A stretch of 63,968 bases of DNA, the filler included, from Klebsormidium nitens (taxonomy: Eukaryota > Plantae > Klebsormidiophyceae): NCBI GenBank assembly GCA_000708835.1. It is 7 parts of 7 records of this genome, joined end to end, with 100 filler letters (N's around TTAATTAATTAA, not from the genome) between each part and the next. Parts side by side here need not be neighbours in the genome. Positions count along the whole stretch, not along the records: positions 27,479 to 30,529 come from DF238441.1; 6 more parts are not named here. One strand, given 5' to 3'. Position numbers and translations under genes: made by a program. Shown one piece after another: positions 761 through 30,529 of this stretch. The notes beneath the pieces are model-generated. The model ran no database searches. It had not been told where the DNA came from and saw only the letters and a list, made by a program, of their open reading frames with translations. How positions within the stretch are numbered: the stretch's first letter is position 1; each line of letters opens with the position of its first letter.

Positions 761-2505
761 TCTTCTCATTACCCCTTCATTACTCTTTTTACACACACAC
801 ACCACATGATCGAACCCATGGAACAATCCAAGAACGCAAGAGTGCATTACCCCATTACCCTATTACCCCTCATGTTTGTATGTATGTGAACAGATTTCAA
901 CACTTCGAATGCCCAACATGCTGTTTAGAAAAGAACTGGACCTCTTGAAGGTGGGTAATGAGTAATGAGTAATCAGAACTTATTTTACGCATTACTCTCT
1001 TATTACCCTCCTCTACCACACAACACCACATGATCGAACCCATGGAACAACCCAAGAACGCAAGAGTACATGCATTACCCCATTACCCTATTACCCCTCA
1101 TGTTTGTATGTATGTGAACGAATTCAACACTTCCAATGCCCACCAACATGCCGTTTTCAAAAAGAAACGGNNNNNNNNNNNNNNNNNNNNNNNNNNNNNN
1201 NNNNNNNNNNNNNNNNNNNNNNNNNNNNNNNNNNNNNNNNNNNNNNNNNNNNNNNNNNNNNNNNNNNNNNNNNNNNNNNNNNNNNNNNNNNNNNNNNNNN
1301 NNNNNNNNNNNNNNNNNNNNNNNNNNNNNNNNNNNNNNNNNNNNNNNNNNNNNNNNNNNNNNNNNNNNNNNNNNNNNNNNNNNNNNNNNNNNNNNNNNNN
1401 NNNNNNNNNNNNNNNNNNNNNNNNNNNNNNNNNNNNNNNNNNNNNNNNNNNNNNNNNNNNNNNNNNNNNNNNNNNNNNNNNNNNNNNNNNNNNNNNNNNN
1501 NNNNNNNNNNNNNNNNNNNNNNNNNNNNNNNNNNNNNNNNNNNNNNNNNNNNNNNNNNNNNNNNNNNNNNNNNNNNNNNNNNNNNNNNNNNNNNNNNNNN
1601 NNNNNNNNNNNNNNNNNNNNNNNNNNNNNNNNNNNNNNNNNNNNNNNNNNNNNNNNNNNNNNNNNNNNNNNNNNNNNNNNNNNNNNNNNNNNNNNNNNNN
1701 NNNNNNNNNNNNNNNNNNNNNNNNNNNNNNNNNNNNNNNNNNNNNNNNNNNNNNNNNATGCCCACCAACATGCCGTTTTCAAAAAGAAACGGACCTCATG
1801 GAGGTGGGTAATGAGTAATAAATAATGAGAAACTAGTTGCGCATTACTCTCTTACAACCCTCCTCTACCACACAGCCACCACATGATCTTACCCATGGAA
1901 CAACCCAAGAACGCAAGAGTGCATTACCCCATTACCCTATTACCCCTCATGTTTGTATGTATGTGAACAGATTTCAACACTTCGAATGCCCATGTTATTT
2001 TAGAAAAGAATTGGACCTCTTGGAGGTGGGTAATGAGTAATGAGTAATGAGAACCTATTTTATGCATTACTCTCTTATTACCCTCTCTACCACACACACA
2101 CCACATGATCGAACCCATGATCTAACCCAATAACGCAAGAGTGCATTACTCCATTACCCTATTACCTCTCATGTTTGTATGTATGTGAACGGATTCAACA
2201 CTTTCAATGCCCAACATGCCGTTTTCAAAAAGAAATGGACCTCTCGGAGGTGGGTAATGAGTAATGAGTAATAAGAAACTATTTGCGCATTACGCTGTTA
2301 TTACCCCCTCTACCACCCACACACCACACTGACATGATCGAATCCATGGAACAACCCAGGAACGCAAAAGTGCATTACCCCGTTATCCTACCCCTCATAT
2401 CTTTAAATACGTGTTTTTTTGAACTTCAGCTGCGCTCAGCTACTTGTTTCCAAACAAGAGAACGACTTGAAGACGTGGGTAATAAGGTCATGAGTAATGA
2501 GAACT
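761..2505. repeat. Tandem satellite of about 222-225 bp units rich in ATTAC(C/T) and GTAAT motifs
   Basis: The anchor GTGGGTAAT occurs at 951, 1804, 2026, 2250 and 2475 (spacings 222, 224 and 225 in the ungapped part). Units share CCACATGATCGAACCCATGGAACAA and GTTTGTATGTATGTGAAC. The array spans the N gap at 1171-1757. Confidence 0.92.
1171..1757. other. Assembly gap (587 N) inside the tandem array
   Basis: Run of N flanked on both sides by the same repeat unit. Confidence 0.99.
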
Positions 2506-2767
2506 GTTTGAGCAGGGGACTTGGATTGGGGAGCACTTCCGGCAGTTCATGTACCATTTTGATCAATCAGAGTACATAACCCAATAATCCAGTTGATGGT
2601 GTACATTCCTCTGAGGATGCTACAAGTCCATCAATCGGATATGCCATCGCTTTTGACGTTAGGGTGTTCTCCTCATCAGTGAAAAGAGCAAAACGTGTAC
2701 ATACTTTGTCAATCAGTGTCTCATCAATCAGCGTACATCACTCGAAATCTTAACTCGATTGGACAAA

Positions 2768-5700
2768 TTAATACAACAATTGGGTCCGCATTCCCACGGT
2801 CCACACGGCCGCCTCAATTGCAATGCTAAGCTTCGCGTCGTCGACTCGTCTTAAAGAGCTGTTATAGCCGCCAAGGAGCAAAGGCAATATCACCATGAGG
2901 TTGTCAAGCCCTGAATACCACCCCAGACTCCTGAAGCCCTTGAGAAAGCTATTGACCGACTCCACGGCCGACGTATTGACCCAGTGTAGTCCGCAGTAGC
3001 TCTCTGGACAATTGGAGGGGCCGCACTTGTGCACTTCGGCTCCAGCCTTCGCGTAGTGGATTTGCGTAGTGGAATCTGTGCATGAAAAGGTGTACATCAG
3101 CCTTTATTCGTACAACAAGAATCGATGTACACGTTTCGATCCAAGGATCACAACTCTCAGCTCCGGCGCAACTGCAAATGAGTTCCAATGTACACGCAAC
3201 GTTGTATGACTTTTCGCTTGGCAACAACGCCCTCTGCAAATAAGCCTTAACGTACACAAATTGTTGAAGCCCCATACCAGTACTTGAAAGGGCGCCTTCT
3301 CACCTGTCGACACTAAATCTAACGTTGGCAAAGTACCCCGGGGCCCTGCGCATGCAATAATTTCGACGCGCACACGCGTTGTCGTACACAAGGATCTCGG
3401 GCAGGTCCTCGCGTCTCAGCCGCGTGTACAGCACGGCAAACACGTCCCTTGGGCTCTCCCCACGCAGCATCGTGTGGAACCCGTAGCTCAATCTGTGGGG
3501 GCAACAAAACACAAAGACCCCCCGACTTCTATTCGGCCGCTTGCTGGCGTTTCCCTTCTTCCCCGAGAGCTTTCCGGCGGCCTTGACAAGCCCGAGTACG
3601 TTCTCGGCGTCCCATTCGGTCACCGACTTTCCCGTAGCGCATTTGAACTCTTCCGAGCTTCTGCTCCGGCCGTCCGGATGCTCAAAGCTTGAGTAGTGCG
3701 TCAAGCCCCGCTTCTGCTCCCAACCGGGAAGGGTGTAGCACGCCAAGGCGTCCTGCTCGGCACGGAAGCTATGCTCTGACGGAAGCGGATGCAGCCCGGC
3801 CCCCTCCTCGTCTCGTCCCAACCTCTCTCTTAAAAGTGAGCGCTCGTGATCGCTCATGGCCTCCCATTGCTCCGCGCTCGGCTCCAATCTCTCGATCCCT
3901 GGGAGCAGCTCGTTTGCCAACCCTCGCGCCTCGTCCAGCCGTCGGCGCTCCTCGATGCTCAGGGGGCGCCTTCGGGCCTCCGCAAGAAGGACGACCGCTC
4001 TTTCGAACGAGTCGATCGCCTTGTGCACCCAGCCTCGCCGCCCATTCACCTCGAACCCCGTTGCTCCCCTAGCAAGGAGCGCGAGCATGTACAGGTGATG
4101 GAGGGTGCGCATGAAGAACGCGGGAAACGTGAGCCCTCCGTACGAGTCCAGGAGCCGCCGCAAGACGGGCGCCTCTCGTCCCAACTCGCGGCGGTCCTCG
4201 AGAGAGGCCTCGCCGCCCAGCAAGAGCTTCCGGACCACGTGCAGCGTGGCAACTCCGATCAGGTCCTCGTCCGAATCGTGCGCGCCGAGGGAGTAGAGGA
4301 GCTCGGTCCACTCGCCAACCCAGTGCTCCCAGACGTTTGGGCTCAATCCCCGTCTCGCAAAGTCGGCTTGGATGCTCGTCAGCAACTCGAAGACGGCCAG
4401 GTTGCGGTCCCGCACCATGGTCCGCTGCTCAACGAGGAGGCGCCTCCTGCCGTCTTCCGGAAGCGGCCCTTCATCCTCACCAGGCCCAAATCGCTTCACG
4501 ATTCGAGGGTCCTCGTGAGCGAGCCCGTCCAGGAGCGCCTCAAACTCCGCCTTCGAAAGCCGTTCCCCTACCTTTTCATCCTTAGGGCGGTGCTGAGAGA
4601 GGCGCGCGATCGCCTCTCGTAGCTCCGGTTGCAATAAAAGCTTGCGCTTCATGCCGCCGCCCTCGAGGCCGGCTCCGCAATAGTCGCGCCCCGAAATCGA
4701 GCTCTTCTCGAGGAGCGTTCCGCTCGACTCTCGGCTCGGGTGGCAGAACGTACGTTGCGCGTCGAGGGAGGAGCTGCCAAGCCCCCCAGGCTTTTGCGCG
4801 CCGTCGGTGCTCGCCAACCCCACGATGCCGTCGCAAAGCAGCACCTGCACGTGTGTGCACAAGTGTACGTTCAATTTCGTGTACATCATCACATATGATG
4901 GACTGGGGGTACGGCCGACCACGCAACGTCCAGCACCTTCTTCGATTTCATTCAAAGACCATGGTCTGTAGGAGACCTGAGACAGCAGAGACGGCACGGA
5001 CACGAGCGTCTCGTGTCCAAAATTGATTGAAGTCTTGTGGGCTTTTACTCTCACCTTGGGATGGGGCCCGCATAGCGAGCAGCAGTCTCGTAGCCCGAGC
5101 CCGACCAGCTTGAAGAAGTCGAGGCTCGCCCTCCGCCACGTCTCCTCGCTCAAGACGGCCACTTCCGGCGACCGTTGGAAGGCCGCTTGATGAGTTGCTA
5201 GCTCGGCCTTGAAGGAATGGCCGTGCTGCATGCCCCGCAAGAGCAGTTGCAAGCTCTCTTGGACGAAGATCGTCCTGCGGTTCCACGTGAAGAGCCCCAA
5301 ATGCTCGCCATCGAAGTGGATCGCGTGCGCCGCGTTGAGGCACTGACAATGGTACACTCGCACCCGCACTTGTTGGCTCCATTGCGAGGCCGTGACGGCC
5401 GCTTCGACCCACTGCTCGACCCACGAACCGCCACACGCTGGGGGGCCCAAAGGGCAGGGCGCGCTCAACAGGCCCTTCTCTGACAGCTCCGCAAAGTGGC
5501 AATCCCTCAGCTTGCTCACGGGAACAGGGCGGTTGAGCGAAGTCACGAGCGGATCGTGAACGGCATGCGCGTCGCTCAGTCGCGCCAGCTTGGGCCTCAA
5601 GACTTGAACGGCCTCCGTTGTCAGAAGCATGACGGGGGCGCGAACCCGCGAAGCCTCTCCGTGCTCGCATCGACCGCCCGCGGATGCCAGGGAGGCCATC

Positions 5701-8897: not shown

Positions 8898-11761
8898 ATG
8901 CAGCCTGCAAACATGGCAGAGGTTGATACCACACCGCTGATCATCAGGAAGGAAACCCACGTGTCACAGTCTCCAGCAGGATCAGTACCCGTGCGCAGGC
9001 CTCCTGCCGACAAGGGGTCTCGGCAGGCAGCTGCACAGTGGACAAGGGCGTCGATTGTGCTTGCTTCTGTCCTTGGAGTCGCCCTTCTGGCATACTTCCT
9101 GGCCCCCTCTAATCAGGCCCACCAGACCAGTGTCACGGACAACGTGAAAGATGCAGCAAGGCAGGCGGGACAGACAGGACGGGCATACCAGGTGAGCAGC
9201 AGAATGCGGTTGTATAAAACCTGGCCAGTATCATTCGCTATGCTTGGTTGAATTAAGCTCGGATTCGTATCTTTGAAATTTCCTTGCAGATTCATAGCAT
9301 ATTTCAAGACCAATCCGGCAAGCAGAAGATTTTAGCTTTTGAAAAGCAGGCCTTGTGACGAAAAGTTCAATTGGATTGCCTCCCTTCTGCTGCATGCATA
9401 TTGTGCATGCATCGATTGTGAACAGCTCAACACATTTCCCCGCAGAACGAAGCCCAGAAGCAGGCTGGTTCAGCCTACAAAGCTGCCCAGGACACAGCTT
9501 ATGACACATCAGCCAAAGCGGGTCAGGCATGGCAAGACACAAAGAAGCAGGCAAGCACACACTTGCAACCATATGATCTTTGAGCTTGAGAACATCCAAT
9601 GCTAACCTAGTTCTGCTTGAGAACACCCAATGCTTAAGTAGTTTCTCTGAGATTTTCTTTTGCGCAAACTGTTATGTGCATGCCTGAAAGCCAGGGTGTT
9701 TGATGGGTGTGGATCAGGGTTTGCATGTTACACATTCTTGCTTGGAAGACCAAACTTTGATAGGTTGTGACTTGTGACCAGCGTTCTGTTGGAAAGAGCA
9801 AGCTCAATCATCTTTTTGCTTGGAACTGATGTTCAGATGGCTTCAAGCAGCTAATCAGCATCCTTTTTGTTTGCAGGCCCAGGGTGCTGCTGGCTATGCA
9901 GAGAAGCAAGGCCGTGACTGGTGGAACACTCTGACGTTTGGTCTCCTCAGGGCCCGGTCTGCAGCAGACGAAACAGCTTCTCAGGCAGAATCGAAGGCAA
10001 GGTCCTACTCAAACCAGGCACAGGATGTTGCTGACAAGACATCAAAGAAGGCTGGCCAGTACGCGGACAGCGCACAGAGGAAAGCCGGAGAGTACGCAGA
10101 CAGTGCTCAGCAAACGGCTGGGGAGGCTGTGGATGAAGCTCGCCGCCAGCGTGACCAGGTGAGGATGAGCTGCATTTGAGTGGTTCGAAACTTTGTATCT
10201 GTTTCATCTGGTTTCTTTTCCACTGATGCTTTATGAGGAACACAAATGTTTTGAGTGTATGCCACTTCTTTCCTGCATTTTGCCCAGATGCTATCATCAG
10301 ATCTCCTTACAAGTCAGGCTTCATGAATCTTAGCAATCGCTTCCATAAGTCAAGTCAAGTGCATTTAACTAGAGAACGCCTTGTCAGATGATTGCAATCC
10401 GTGCACTGTAATTGTTTTGGCCAGAGAATATATACATACCTTGATGTCTGAACGCATACCAATATTTTGCAGAAACTTTGTTTTAAGATTCTTCAATCTG
10501 ATGTAGCTGTCAGCTGTAAAAACGATTTACAAACTTGCCTCTCTTTTAAGTTCCATGCTAGTAATGTGTTTGTTCACACACGCTGATAGGCATTTCTTAA
10601 GGAACTTTGAGCTCACTCTTCTCTTGTTCCTCCACACAGGCTGTGAACGCTGGGTATGGCCTGTGGAACAAGCTCAAGAACCTGATCTTCAGGAACGTCA
10701 ACTACGCCAGCGACCAGGCCAACTGGGCTTCTGACAAGGCTGCAGACTACGCTGGCCAGGCCCAGGACACCGCGCAGGAGTATACCGATGCTGCCAAGAC
10801 CGCCGCTCAAAGGGAAGCTTCCCGCGCCAAGGGTAAGGCTGGTGATGCCGCCCAGTATGCTGCTGACACCGCGGCCGAAGCCAAGAGGAAGGGAAAGAAC
10901 GCTGCTCACCACGCTCAAGACACTGCGTACGAGACAGCGGAGAGCGCGAGGCAGACGGCCAGGGACACTGCCCAGTATGCCTCAGACACCGCCTACCATG
11001 CCAAGCACAAGGGGGAGCAGGCTGCGGAGTATGTTAAGGACACTGCGTATGCGGGTGGGGAGGCTGCAGGTCAGGCAGCCAAGAAGGGTGCTCAGTACGG
11101 CAGGGACGCTGTGAACTATGCCGCTGAGACTGGGGAGGCAGCTCGGGATGCCGCAGTCAAGGGTGGCAAGAACGCTGCTCAGTACACCAAGGACACGGCG
11201 AACGCTGCATACGAGACGGCGCAAGGAGTCGGCCAGGGCACCAAGGAGACCTTCGAGGACGCAGCTGAGTACGTGGAGGAGCTGGCCGAGGGGGCTGTGG
11301 ATCAGGTGGGTTTGATTGGTCCATCAAACAACAGTTTGTTATTCCGTGGTCAGCACGTGGCCTGCTTTCGAGGAGTCCTGATGTAGAGGCAAAATTGGCT
11401 TGCTTTTGGACTTTGAAAGCTTTGCGATGCAAGGGGTAAGTCCGATTTCATCTACCTTTTTAGGAGCTTTCAGTTGCTTCTCTTCGAATTCGGAATGCGA
11501 TTTCCTGTACGAGAGTCAGCTGTTGAATCGTCTGCCATTGAAGTTCCTTTGCGTCGCCTCCTATAGGCTTATCGCGCGGGTCAGAAGGCGCACAAGTACA
11601 CCAAGGACGCTGCCACGCAAGCTGGAGAGGGGTTGGGCAACATCAAGGACAAGGCCCAGTATGTGGCAGGCGAGACAATCGAAGCTGCAGGTAGAGTCGG
11701 CGAGTCAGCCGCCAAGGCCACTCAGAAAGTGGGAAAGAAGACGAAGGGACAGGCTGTTTAA
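8898..11761 (+). CDS. Late embryogenesis abundant (group 3/LEA_4-like) protein with an N-terminal hydrophobic segment, 5 exons, 513 aa
   Basis: Exons 8898-9191, 9446-9550, 9877-10158, 10640-11305 and 11567-11761 are all phase 0 and join in frame. The protein has Ala/Lys/Thr/Asp/Tyr-rich 11-mer-like repeats (e.g. AAQYAADTAAE, AAQYTKDTANA) and a TM-like ASIVLASVLGVALLAYFL. Intron 2 is GC-AG. Confidence 0.85.
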
Positions 11762-27478: not shown

Positions 27479-27521
27479 GCATCAGTTGCATCAGTTGCAT
27501 CAGTTGCATCAGTGCATCAAC
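27479..27521. repeat. GCATCAGTT 9-bp microsatellite at scaffold start
   Basis: (GCATCAGTT)3 followed by GCATCAGT and GCATCAA, then degenerate GCAT-rich sequence. Confidence 0.8.
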
Positions 27522-27689
27522 ATAGGTGCATGAGGGCATTTGTGCATTCATGCATCAGCGGCATCGGTAAGTGCACTTTTTAACAAGAACTCTCTTGATT
27601 ATTGTTGCATCATTGATTAGAATGTTTGTATCTTGTCCTTGAAACAGACTACCCATTTTGCATTTCGCAAAGGAATCAACGAGGACTTT

Positions 27690-28103
27690 CTACCCACCCG
27701 TCTGGTGTTGCATGACATCAAATTCATACCGCTCTCCTGACCTCCACGGAATTCCCGAGTCTGCCACTAGTTCCTCGTCACATAGGATCTGGTAAGAAGA
27801 TAGATCTGAGATCCCAGCTTCTTCGCGGAAGTCTTTGAGACAGCCGGCCCAGGTCTTCTTTGTCGGGAAGTGGTATTCAAATACCTCCCCATTCTGAGGC
27901 TTGAAGGTGACGTAGACATGCTTCCTGAGCTCATCTAGACACTTCACCAGGGAGTCTGGTTTCAGCTGATTCTTACCGACATAGTCTCTAAAGGCCTTGC
28001 AAGTAATCGTGTGCAGCTTCTTATCAGCATCCCAGGTCGCTACAGCTGCAAGCAATTCTGGGTATGTGTCGCTGCTCTTGGTGCCAGCTCTGCAGCTTCT
28101 CAT
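27690..28103 (-). CDS. Divergent SUMO-like protein (beta-grasp) with an N-terminal extension, ending HQTGG-stop
   Basis: HVYVTFKPQNGEVFEY...CLKDFREEAGISDLSSYQILCDEELV...EFDVMQHQTGG* aligns by eye with plant SUMO (HINLKVKGQDGNEVFF...[22 protein letters not shown]...IDAMLHQTGG). The 5' end is uncertain: an ATG at 28103, or a splice acceptor CTGCAG near 28092. Confidence 0.7.
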   Translation of the reverse strand: MRSCRAGTKSSDTYPELLAAVATWDADKKLHTITCKAFRDYVGKNQLKPDSLVKCLDELRKHVYVTFKPQNGEVFEYHFPTKKTWAGCLKDFREEAGISDLSSYQILCDEELVADSGIPWRSGERYEFDVMQHQTGG

Positions 28104-28315
28104 GCAGCTCAGACAGTGACAGTTCAACCCCGTCAGCAGTGGCCGCTTGCGCCATTGCTGTATCGCTGTATTGCTATAGTGCTGCTCCCTGCAAATCCAA
28201 CCTTTCTACCGTCGCCGGCGTCCTTTGCGGCCTCAACTCCTGTTAACTGACTATGTTGCATTCCTCGGGCCGCATCATATCTTATAGAACCCTAAATCGG
28301 CATTTGTGAGGCGAT

Positions 28316-29436
28316 ATGGGCGCTTCCTGTATTCATGTGGAGAAGCTCCTGAACAAGCTGCGCAACAATCAGCTCTGCCATCGGCTGGCTGAAGCTGCAA
28401 CAACGGTGCTGGTTTGTCCTATATGTCAGAGCATGCGAGCAAACCACCTTCTGATGTTGGAGGAGGTAGCCAGGGACGCTACTGAGATTTTTAGGGATCT
28501 TTTAGTGGATGAGTTGCTACCACAGCTTGTGCAGCAACAGAGCAACTTTCAAAGACAAAGCCGCACCACTGTAAAGACAATTGCACTCAGAAATCATATT
28601 AACCAGGACATCCTGGTCAACCCTGTTAGAGGAAAGCAGTGCCGCCATGCAGACTGCTTTGAGCTGTTGGACTATCTTGAGCGGTGGCATATCCACAAGG
28701 GGAAGTGTGAATTCTGCGACAAACCGGCACCCTTGAAATCACTGGCTCTAGACGTCGAGCTGCAGCAATTCTGCAAACAGGACCATGTAAGAGCATCAGG
28801 TCTTGAGAGGGCAAACCTGACTCCGGACAACACTTTATCGCTGCCCTCTGACATGGTGCCCGTCCTTGACCTTGAAAAAATGGAGGTGCCTGAAAGACCG
28901 GTCAAAGAAGAGAGTGTCCCACGTCAAGCAGGCGTTCCGGAAGTTCCTCCAAGAGCCGTGACCCACGGAACGGTGAGTTTTGCCAGCTGTATTTATAGTG
29001 TTATCAATGCACTGCATCTCTTGAACCTGAGCATGCCAACATCTTGTTTGGTAGCTTCCTGACCGTCCTTGTACTTCTCATACAGTGTACCAGCATTGCT
29101 TACACTGAGTTTAAAGATGAGGTGTTGGCTTGGCCAGCACCGATGTTGTTGTTGTTGGTTGATTATAGGGACTTATGCAAGCGTGAATATATTTGGCAGG
29201 CTTACGATGATGATGAGGTCATGCCTTGGCCTCAAGACGCTCCGAAGGAGGTTGCTGCTTGGGAAGCTCTCGGAGTGAAACCGTGCAGGAGGAGAAGCGA
29301 ATTGCTCTGGGTATTTTACTTTAAACCTGATGGTGGTGGGAGGAAATGTGTCACTAGCAAGGATTTTTGGACGGGTGTGGAAAAAGCTTTGGGCAAAATA
29401 AACAAATCCTTACCAAACACGTTCCGAAGCACTTGA
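28316..29436 (+). CDS. SP-RING (zf-MIZ) SUMO E3-like protein with PWWP-like C-terminus, 2 exons
   Basis: IALRNHINQDILVNPVRGKQCRHADCFEL...KCEFCDKP..LKSLALDVEL matches the SP-RING pattern (PxRGxxCxHxxCF[DE]L...CxxC). A phase-0 GT-AG intron (~28973-29084) joins the ORF ending at 29436, which has IWQAY...MPWP...LWVFYF...FWTGVEKAL (PWWP-like, weaker). Confidence 0.7.
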
Positions 29437-29696
29437 CGTGGCAAATTGATAGATCGTGCAGAATAAAACGAAAACAAGAATCGCTTTGGAACATGTTTCG
29501 ATCATCAACGGCGTACTGTAATCAAAACAATAGGAGAGTCCTCTAACTTGTTTACTATTTGGCCTGCCACAAGTCTTTGTACAATCGCTGCCCTTTGGGA
29601 ACACCTGATTGTTCTTCCAAAAGGTCTATATCGTTCATCTTCCTAGTGCCAAGGAGTTCTCGCCTCTCTAACCTGAAGCATGTCGCCCTCTGCCGC

Positions 29697-29940
29697 TTAT
29701 GCACCACCAGCCATTCTCTGACGAACGCATGAACCATACTCTGAAACTCTGGAATCTGTGATTCGGGCTCCGGAAATCTGAACCCGATACGCCACCGTCA
29801 TGTGAATGTCCTTATATGCATTGACATTCAAAACTGGGATGTCTTGAATCTCGATGAGAAATCTGTGCAGAGTTTCGTCGACTGCCCCATTCTCGGGGAC
29901 CGTCTCGAACATGATCTTCGACTCAACTCCCGACACCTGC
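29697..29940 (-). CDS. Hypothetical exon/ORF, weakly ubiquitin-like at its C-terminus
   Basis: After the acceptor ATAAGCAG the frame reads VSGVESK...YRVQISGARITDSRVSEYGSCVRQRMAGGA*, loosely like ubiquitin RLIFAGKQLEDGRTLSDY...LRLRGG. The alignment needs a gap and is weak. Confidence 0.2.
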
Positions 29941-30529
29941 TTATAATAATCAATCAATGATACGGATGAGCCACTTGATTATTATGTTTCATAAGAATAA
30001 ACATTTTATGAAACAGATAATGATGTGGTATGAGACAGGGCAAACATGCTAGAACAAGAATATACTAAAGTATGAGGCATGGTATACATACTATGAACAG
30101 ATATCAGATTTAAAGTAATACAGATGTCTATTGTGGTCCAGATTCTGGCGCCAAACATCTAGTCACGATCGTACCACTCATCTATCTCTTTTTCGCCCCT
30201 GTACACCCGGCACATACCAGCGATCCTGCGGTCGGGCGAAATTCACTCACGTGTGTCGCACCGCATACACAGGGTTTTTTGGCGGTTTACCATGGTCGGT
30301 TACGGGCTGTTTAAAAACCAGATTCGTGCAATAACCAGACTTGAAATATGGTTACAGCCCCGGTTACTGGACAAAGAACCAGACACCGATCGTGCCGCCG
30401 CCACCATACCCGATGCCATCTTTTCTTGATACTCTCCCGGCGATTCCTTATGCCTTGAAACGCGCACCAGGACGACCAGCGGCGGCCTTTTTAGGCTTCC
30501 GTGATGCGACACCGATCACGATCAACAAG

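Follow-up and report, generated by a model that had tools for sequence, protein, structure and literature searches.

The alga Klebsormidium nitens carries, on a single small scaffold, two divergently transcribed genes that would seem to encode a very divergent SUMO-family modifier and a short SP-RING ligase (E3). Normally, SUMO and its E3 ligases are encoded by housekeeping genes that are universal and lie apart from one another. The reading we favour on balance is that this pair is a dedicated modifier and ligase module, rare, lineage-restricted and plausibly of giant-virus origin, whose modifier would be conjugated to target proteins. The DNA analysed, called the window here, is a stretch of 63,968 nucleotides in which seven pieces of the assembly GCA_000708835.1 are joined end to end, and the pair lies on the piece at 27479-30529, a 3-kb orphan scaffold (DF238441.1).

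Relatives of the pair were found at five independent loci, and in each of them the two genes stand head to head, which bears out the dedicated linkage proposed in an earlier note made from the sequence of the window. L001 is a 5.98-kb metagenome contig from ENA, and L002, of 2.9 kb and 95% identical to L001, comes from the NCBI assembly GCA_965192845.1. Two variants of a more distant locus, 91% identical to one another, each occur in two JGI metagenomes (L003=L004 and L005=L006). The fifth relative is K. subtile, where a single Trinity gene, DN349_c0_g1, has six isoforms, each for either the E3 or the SUMO-like protein (P0002-P0006). The copies of the window, L001 and K. subtile are referred to below as Klebsormidium-type. 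The layout of the pair in the window is as follows.

27690 to 28155, minus strand: SUMO-like modifier gene (from open reading frames, the homologues P0001 and P0002, and alignment to L001)
27693 to 27962, minus strand: predicted beta-grasp (SUMO-like) domain, the last 90 residues of the modifier with the C-terminal di-glycine (AlphaFold2, Foldseek)
28156 to 28315, no strand: 160-nt spacer between the divergent start codons (alignment to L001, K. subtile transcripts)
28316 to 28972, plus strand: E3 exon 1, 219 codons, with N-terminal Cys/His motif, helical linker, SP-RING and SUMO-interacting motif (SIM)-like stretch
28595 to 28726, plus strand: SP-RING (zf-MIZ) domain, residues 94-137 (Pfam PF02891, PDB sequence matches)
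28856 to 28888, plus strand: SIM-like stretch, residues 181-191 (read off the alignment; function putative)
28973 to 29199, plus strand: E3 intron, 227 nt, GTGAGT...CAG, phase 0 (missing from the K. subtile transcript ORF P0003)
29200 to 29436, plus strand: E3 exon 2, 78 codons and stop, conserved C-terminal domain (ratio of nonsynonymous to synonymous substitution rates (dN/dS), L003 counterpart)

The modifier is seen in the window as a minus-strand open reading frame (ORF), 27690-28127, of 145 amino acids that ends in H-Q-T-G-G with a TAG codon directly after it. The earlier note had read this terminus and its stop correctly, but missed both the true start and a break in the frame. The start codon common to the homologues is the ATG at 28155, the 145-residue ORF being the downstream part of the gene, and relative to the intact 154-residue P0001 and P0002 there is one frameshift (one gap column in the alignment to L001) and no other stop. 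Because the modifier starts at 28155, the two start codons are 160 nt apart and not the 210 bp or so given earlier. The spacer is presumed to hold a shared promoter and the 5′ untranslated regions.

Intact homologues of the modifier, 154 amino acids in length, consist of a region of ~65 residues that is predicted to be helical, followed by a predicted beta-grasp domain ending in Q-x-G-G. The N-terminal region is conserved within the family and resembles nothing known; a match to CNOT10 (E 0.04) was judged to be due to chance. When the last 90 residues were modelled with AlphaFold2 from an alignment of five family members, the best model had a confidence (pLDDT) of 85.8 and a predicted TM-score (pTM) of 0.72, with the order helix, beta, beta, alpha, beta, beta, beta and a free five-residue tail. 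In a Foldseek search of the PDB with this model, ranks 1-45 were all SUMO chains (E 6e-5 to 6e-4, TM 0.6-0.78, identity 14-22%), including tomato SUMO, human SUMO1/2/3, Arabidopsis SUMO2 and C. elegans SMO-1, with a ubiquitin variant at rank 46 and ISG15 at rank 49. The SUMO-like beta-grasp expected in the earlier note is thus what the model predicts. The terminal Q-x-G-G does not vary among the five family members (31-84% identity), the beta-grasp domains of the most distant copies being 31-32% identical. On the modelled fold, the protein is best placed among the ubiquitin-like modifiers, in the SUMO branch, as a very divergent member.

In the window, L001 (P0001) and K. subtile (P0002) the stop codon directly follows the di-glycine, with T, G or N at the -3 position, so that the modifier of the Klebsormidium-type copies would be synthesised in a form that can be activated directly; the lack of a propeptide claimed for the window copy extends to these relatives. 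In L003 and L005 the ORF continues for 19 or 43 residues past the di-glycine, the codons of which overlap a consensus splice donor, G/GTAAGT (L003 7688-7860; L005 3080-3260). Between these two loci the 160-170 nt after the di-glycine differ by two indels, of 9 nt and 1 nt, and ~165 nt on there is a candidate acceptor, CAG, which is conserved, and a short ORF. The donor, the indels and the CAG with its ORF would fit a tail that drifts freely or, alternatively, an intron with a short tail beyond it, and in both cases further sequence comes after the di-glycine. We infer that the modifier was ancestrally made as a precursor, and that its propeptide has since been lost from the Klebsormidium-type form.

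The E3 ORF begins at 28316 on the plus strand, and the two-exon model of 219 + 78 = 297 codons matches P0003, the transcript ORF of K. subtile, in length. In L003 a 113-nt intron lies at a position and phase that match those of the window intron. The window exons were searched separately, and the natural transcript ORF P0003 was used where a full-length protein was needed. The window protein matches Pfam zf-MIZ with an E of 2.8e-7 and 30.7 bits, P0003 with 29.1 bits and the L003 homologue with 27.9 bits (E 2e-6). The ligands of the motif C-x-H-x2-C ... C-x2-C are C109, H111, C114, C131 and C134; they align residue by residue to those of PIAS2, SIZ1 and SIZ2 and are kept in both clades, that is, at Klebsormidium-type and L003/L005-type loci alike. 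The only sequence matches of the E3 in the PDB were PIAS2, PIAS3, SIZ1 and SIZ2, in every case at the SP-RING and with the zinc ligands aligned, and a profile of four E3 sequences gave a best E of 0.003 (SIZ1). No Pfam match to SAP or PINIT was obtained, apart from a chance-level one to SAP_new25 (E 0.056-0.18), while the zf-Nse profile matched weakly (E 0.03-0.28). The SP-RING with its CxH...CxxC pattern and the absence of the SAP/PINIT context were both as the earlier note had described them, and from its sequence the second gene is best read as a short SP-RING E3 without SAP or PINIT.

Outside the SP-RING, all the E3 homologues start with M-G-(A/S)-x-C-x-H, with C-P-x-C ~30 residues further on (window 28316-28429, residues 1-38). 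This Cys/His motif is a candidate for an extra zinc site, and zf-CHY matches weakly here in L003 (E 0.0095); the N-terminus is possibly also a lipidation signal. Residues 181-191, in both clades, have a hydrophobic core between acidic residues and resemble a SIM, which suggests a putative role in binding the modifier. The domain encoded by exon 2 (78-90 amino acids) is 26% identical to its L003 counterpart, with 19 invariant columns, and gave no match in Pfam (E<=5), by profile in the PDB, or in IMG/VR. A PWWP domain, which had been suggested for this part of the protein, was rejected: neither Pfam nor the PDB gave a match, and the P-W-P of the window is not kept in L003. In L005, E3 exon 1 (1834-2612, minus strand) matches its relatives in two frames, amounting to one frameshift relative to L003.

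The family is small. In a profile search of 1.84 billion representatives with the modifier, only the P0001 cluster and P0009 (E 2e-18) were real; P0010 and P0011, which also appeared, are translated repeats and were judged to be chance matches. A profile search with the E3 gave two clusters only. Between the Klebsormidium-type and the L003/L005-type loci the pair is the sole similarity, at 32-44% protein identity, and across three genomic contexts the flanks differ and the pair alone is common. The invariance of Q-x-G-G, together with conserved homologues of both genes, argues that the resemblance to SUMO and to SP-RING proteins is not due to chance. In K. subtile the pair is transcribed and the E3 is spliced. 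Its E3 isoforms encode 297 amino acids, apart from one variant of 231, and the presence of modifier and E3 in one Trinity gene implies that their transcripts overlap or adjoin.

Over 27605-29436 the window is 81.7% identical to L001, and the similarity stops exactly at the stop codon of the E3. The dN/dS values against L001 and L002, which are 0.19-0.20 for the in-frame part of the modifier, 0.22-0.25 for E3 exon 1 and 0.11-0.13 for exon 2, show that both genes are under purifying selection. The spacer is 86.1% identical to that of L001, compared with 85-88% for the coding exons and 70.7% for the 3′ flank, while the E3 intron is 62.6% identical with 57 gap columns. A spacer as conserved as the exons, and an intron far less so, are consistent with a regulatory region that serves both genes and with a genuine intron. 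On this evidence the pair is best read as a conserved, divergently transcribed two-gene module of rare and lineage-restricted occurrence.

The possibility of a viral carrier, also raised in the earlier note, gains support from the surroundings of the distant copy. Called genes cover ~90% of L003, with gaps of 14-48 nt between several of them, and encode a UvrD-type helicase, a dCMP deaminase, a Nudix protein, an OTU protease and two copies of a gene that combines EsV-1-7 cysteine repeats with a nuclease-like C-terminal part (255-993 and 8933-10189). These copies are ~84% identical, and the first of them (255-993) is spread over two frames. Relatives of the EsV-1-7/nuclease gene, 24-25% identical, occur on IMG/VR contigs, and on one of these, L009, the relative stands beside the major capsid gene of a nucleocytoplasmic large DNA virus (NCLDV; L009 6205-7647). 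The OTU-family cysteine protease (Pfam E 2e-13) is convergent with the modifier gene in both variants (L003 7976-8515, minus strand; L005 3378-3917, minus strand), and this neighbour occurs only in the lineage with sequence after the modifier di-glycine. Beside the Klebsormidium-type pair, ~180 nt downstream of the E3, an ORF of 98 amino acids encodes a mini SET domain (L001 1540-1836, plus strand; L002 1821-2117, minus strand), whose best solved relative is the H3K27 methyltransferase vSET of the chlorovirus PBCV-1 (E 6e-4). The SET ORF is absent from the window piece, which carries none of these accessory genes. Close relatives in IMG/VR were found neither for the helicase and OTU protease of L003 nor for the SET ORF and a 160-amino-acid ORF of L001. 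Phycodnavirus-like core genes have been reported from the genome of K. flaccidum and from the transcriptome of K. subtile (PMC5294986). Taken together, the module is probably part of, or descended from, DNA of a giant virus (Nucleocytoviricota-like) that was endogenised and is expressed in klebsormidiophyte algae. Two further features of these contigs may be recorded, a fourfold tandem repeat of 333 nt at ~8261-9160 of L005 and a PARP catalytic ORF (Pfam E 6e-11) near the end of L001 (5529-5909, minus strand).

A number of observations weigh against a SUMO-type conjugation module of giant-virus origin. For the modifier, only one of the five AlphaFold2 models was confident, the other four having pLDDT of 46-63 from an alignment of only five sequences, and an earlier run on the full-length protein with three sequences was poor (pLDDT 49.7), though it placed the first strands and the helix alike. 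No Pfam family matched the modifier at E<=10 (window domain, P0001, P0002, P0009 and P0012), and neither phmmer nor a five-sequence profile found a ubiquitin-like protein among PDB sequences. For the E3, the zf-MIZ score of 30.7 bits falls under the Pfam gathering score of 33.5, and the usual W-x-C-P-x-C lacks its W and P. The window copy of the modifier is broken once. No E1 or E2 gene is present on any pair-bearing contig. As for the virus, none of the hallmark genes (major capsid, PolB, A32 ATPase, VLTF3) was found on the window piece or on L001-L006 (contigs of 2.6-12.9 kb), the pair was not found in IMG/VR with profiles of the modifier, E3 exon 1 and E3 exon 2, nor in two scans of JGI metagenomes, and the spliceosomal-type intron of the E3 in both clades is no less suited to a nuclear gene than to a viral one.

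The main evolutionary rival takes up these last points. It holds that the two genes are an ordinary lineage-specific nuclear pair, fast-evolving paralogues of the host SUMO and a host SP-RING ligase that emerged in klebsormidiophyte-like algae, that L003 and L005 represent another compact algal nuclear genome, and that neither a virus nor a mobile element is involved. The common position and phase of the intron, the transcription and splicing in K. subtile, and pair-bearing contigs with no viral hallmark gene and no counterpart in IMG/VR would all be expected of such a pair; moreover, genes for EsV-1-7, OTU, Nudix and dCMP deaminase proteins occur in cellular genomes too. Against this, the distribution is very narrow, with two clusters among all the representatives searched, and nothing but the pair is common to the three sets of flanks, whereas the gene density and short gaps of L003, and neighbours that include a vSET-like mini SET domain and an NCLDV-linked EsV-1-7/nuclease gene, are more in keeping with viral DNA. 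NCLDV inserts are also documented in Klebsormidium (PMC5294986). We regard a purely nuclear history as possible, but unlikely.

A second alternative concerns the window copy alone, which, by virtue of its frameshift, would be either a recent pseudogene or the product of an assembly error. It may be a decaying relic, with the modifier killed by the frameshift and degenerate ORFs downstream, while the family functions elsewhere. The break relative to the intact homologues fits decay, and so does the remainder of the piece, 29437-30529, where all the ORFs are short and shift from frame to frame, and where neither a Pfam domain nor a protein-level match to any of the loci compared was found. However, the in-frame part of the modifier has a dN/dS of 0.19 and no further stops, the E3 with its splice sites remains intact and conserved, as does the spacer, and an internal ATG would still yield most of the modifier. 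A single-base error is also plausible in a 3-kb orphan scaffold. That the copy is a relic is a doubtful proposition, although one with some weight.

The main functional rival is that the modifier is a mimic or decoy that is never conjugated and that, like the SUMO-like domains of Rad60, Esc2 and NIP45, binds SIMs, Ubc9 or the neighbouring E3 non-covalently. A protein so divergent that it matches no SUMO profile, with a large N-terminal extension that is unusual for a modifier, could well be of this kind, and the SIM-like stretch of the E3 could hold it without a covalent bond. However, SUMO-like domains that are not conjugated usually lose the di-glycine, whereas here the terminal Q-x-G-G is invariant at 31-32% identity of the beta-grasp and three diverged copies stop exactly after it. 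Pairing with an E3, and with an OTU protease as well in L003 and L005, also resembles a conjugation system, and a decoy seems improbable. Carriage of the pair as cargo by a transposon, suggested in the earlier note, is very improbable: the three different flanking contexts and the end of similarity to L001 exactly at the E3 stop could be read in this way, but neither terminal inverted repeats nor long terminal or long direct repeats were found in the 3-kb piece, domains of a transposase, integrase or reverse transcriptase were likewise missing from it, and none of these domains was seen beside the pair in L001-L006.

The remaining features of the window piece lie on either side of the pair. 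At 27479-27519, with no strand assigned, a tandem array of the 9-mer GCATCAGTT (4.7 copies) is found in the 3′ flank of the modifier gene, and degenerate copies extend it from this left edge of the piece to 27575. The array is common to L001, where similar arrays recur several times at 3896-4170, downstream of the modifier gene; the 3′ flank of the modifier would thus be homologous out to the edge of the piece. Beyond the E3 and convergent with it, two adjoining ORFs of 86 and 60 amino acids in different frames (29555-29957, minus strand) look like one degraded or spliced gene, and gave no Pfam domain and no match in L001-L006. A proline-rich ORF with a K-R-A-P-G-R-P stretch (30341-30529, plus strand) runs out of the right edge, with no match in Pfam. 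No tRNA and no Rfam family was found in the piece.

Compared with canonical SUMO (SMT3/SUMO1-3 and plant SUMO1/2), the modifier has a predicted beta-grasp that superposes best on SUMO itself, with TM-scores of 0.6-0.78, and the window copy ends in Q-T-G-G as SUMO does. It differs in its low identity in structural alignments (14-22%), with no Pfam match to Rad60-SLD or ubiquitin, in the predicted helical extension of ~65 amino acids where SUMO has a short flexible tail, and, in the Klebsormidium-type form, in having no propeptide. Its gene, moreover, is linked to that of its presumed E3. The E3 shares with the Siz/PIAS ligases the C-x-H-x2-C...C-x2-C pattern followed by an L-x-L-D-type segment, and with PIAS an acidic SIM-like stretch downstream of the SP-RING. 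In contrast to these ligases it is far shorter, at 297 amino acids, lacks SAP, PINIT and the W and P already mentioned, stays under the Pfam gathering threshold, and has its own N-terminal Cys/His motif and a C-terminal domain of ~80 amino acids that matches no known family. Nse2/Mms21 (HPY2), of the Smc5/6 complex, is closer in format, being likewise a short SP-RING protein (~250-300 amino acids) with no SAP or PINIT and a helical region before the RING. However, the RING of Nse2 is at its C-terminus whereas ~160 amino acids follow it here, the zf-Nse match is weak, and the Nse2 gene is not linked to a SUMO gene.

Modifiers encoded beside their own enzymes are familiar from bacteria, where ubiquitin-like conjugation operons such as the Bil-type defence operons hold a ubiquitin-like protein next to conjugation and deconjugation enzymes, with their own E1 and E2. 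The likeness is that of a compact module of modifier and enzymes; the bacterial systems are prokaryotic, unrelated in sequence and bring E1 and E2 with them, whereas here the modifier is accompanied by an E3 only, with an OTU protease in one lineage. With giant-virus ubiquitin systems the points in common are that the fold matches of the modifier model in BFVD are giant-virus ubiquitin-like proteins, and that L003 and L005 carry an OTU protease among NCLDV-type neighbours. None of the BFVD proteins is close, however, the best named ones being 10-15% identical. Giant viruses are known to encode ubiquitin-like proteins and ligases, and in a review of their ubiquitin-system genes SUMO comes up only where Ulp1-like proteases are discussed (PMC11915834). 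In the literature searched, no SUMO-type modifier linked to an SP-RING ligase was found in a virus or an alga.

If the pair works as a dedicated module, the SUMO E1 of the cell would activate the modifier at its di-glycine and Ubc9/SCE1 would carry it; use of the host E1 and E2 is proposed because neither is encoded nearby. The SP-RING protein would then engage the loaded E2 and bring about transfer of the modifier to targets, with its SIM-like stretch perhaps holding the modifier in place. The targets may be picked by the N-terminal Cys/His motif and the C-terminal domain of the E3, and every conjugate would also carry the ~65-residue N-terminal domain of the modifier. In an L003-type genome the OTU protease is a candidate for the maturing or the deconjugating enzyme. 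A more specific version, which we offer only tentatively, is that a giant virus carries a self-contained SUMO-type kit, comprising a modifier with an N-terminal effector domain, an SP-RING ligase and, in the viral form, the OTU protease, which hijacks the host E1 and E2 and marks host nuclear proteins during infection. After endogenisation in klebsormidiophytes this kit would have lost the propeptide and have stayed expressed under selection. In that case it would be the first private SUMO-like pathway known, in eukaryotes or in the viruses that infect them, to be encoded by a gene cassette.

A SUMO-type modifier kept beside its own SP-RING ligase across ~60-70% protein divergence would represent a compact and possibly orthogonal conjugation module. 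The propeptide-free form and the extra N-terminal domain are of interest for the specificity of ubiquitin-like modifiers. If the module is viral, it would add SUMO-type tagging to the tools with which giant viruses manipulate their hosts, and would provide an example of such a tool that persisted and stayed expressed once endogenised in a streptophyte alga near the origin of land plants.

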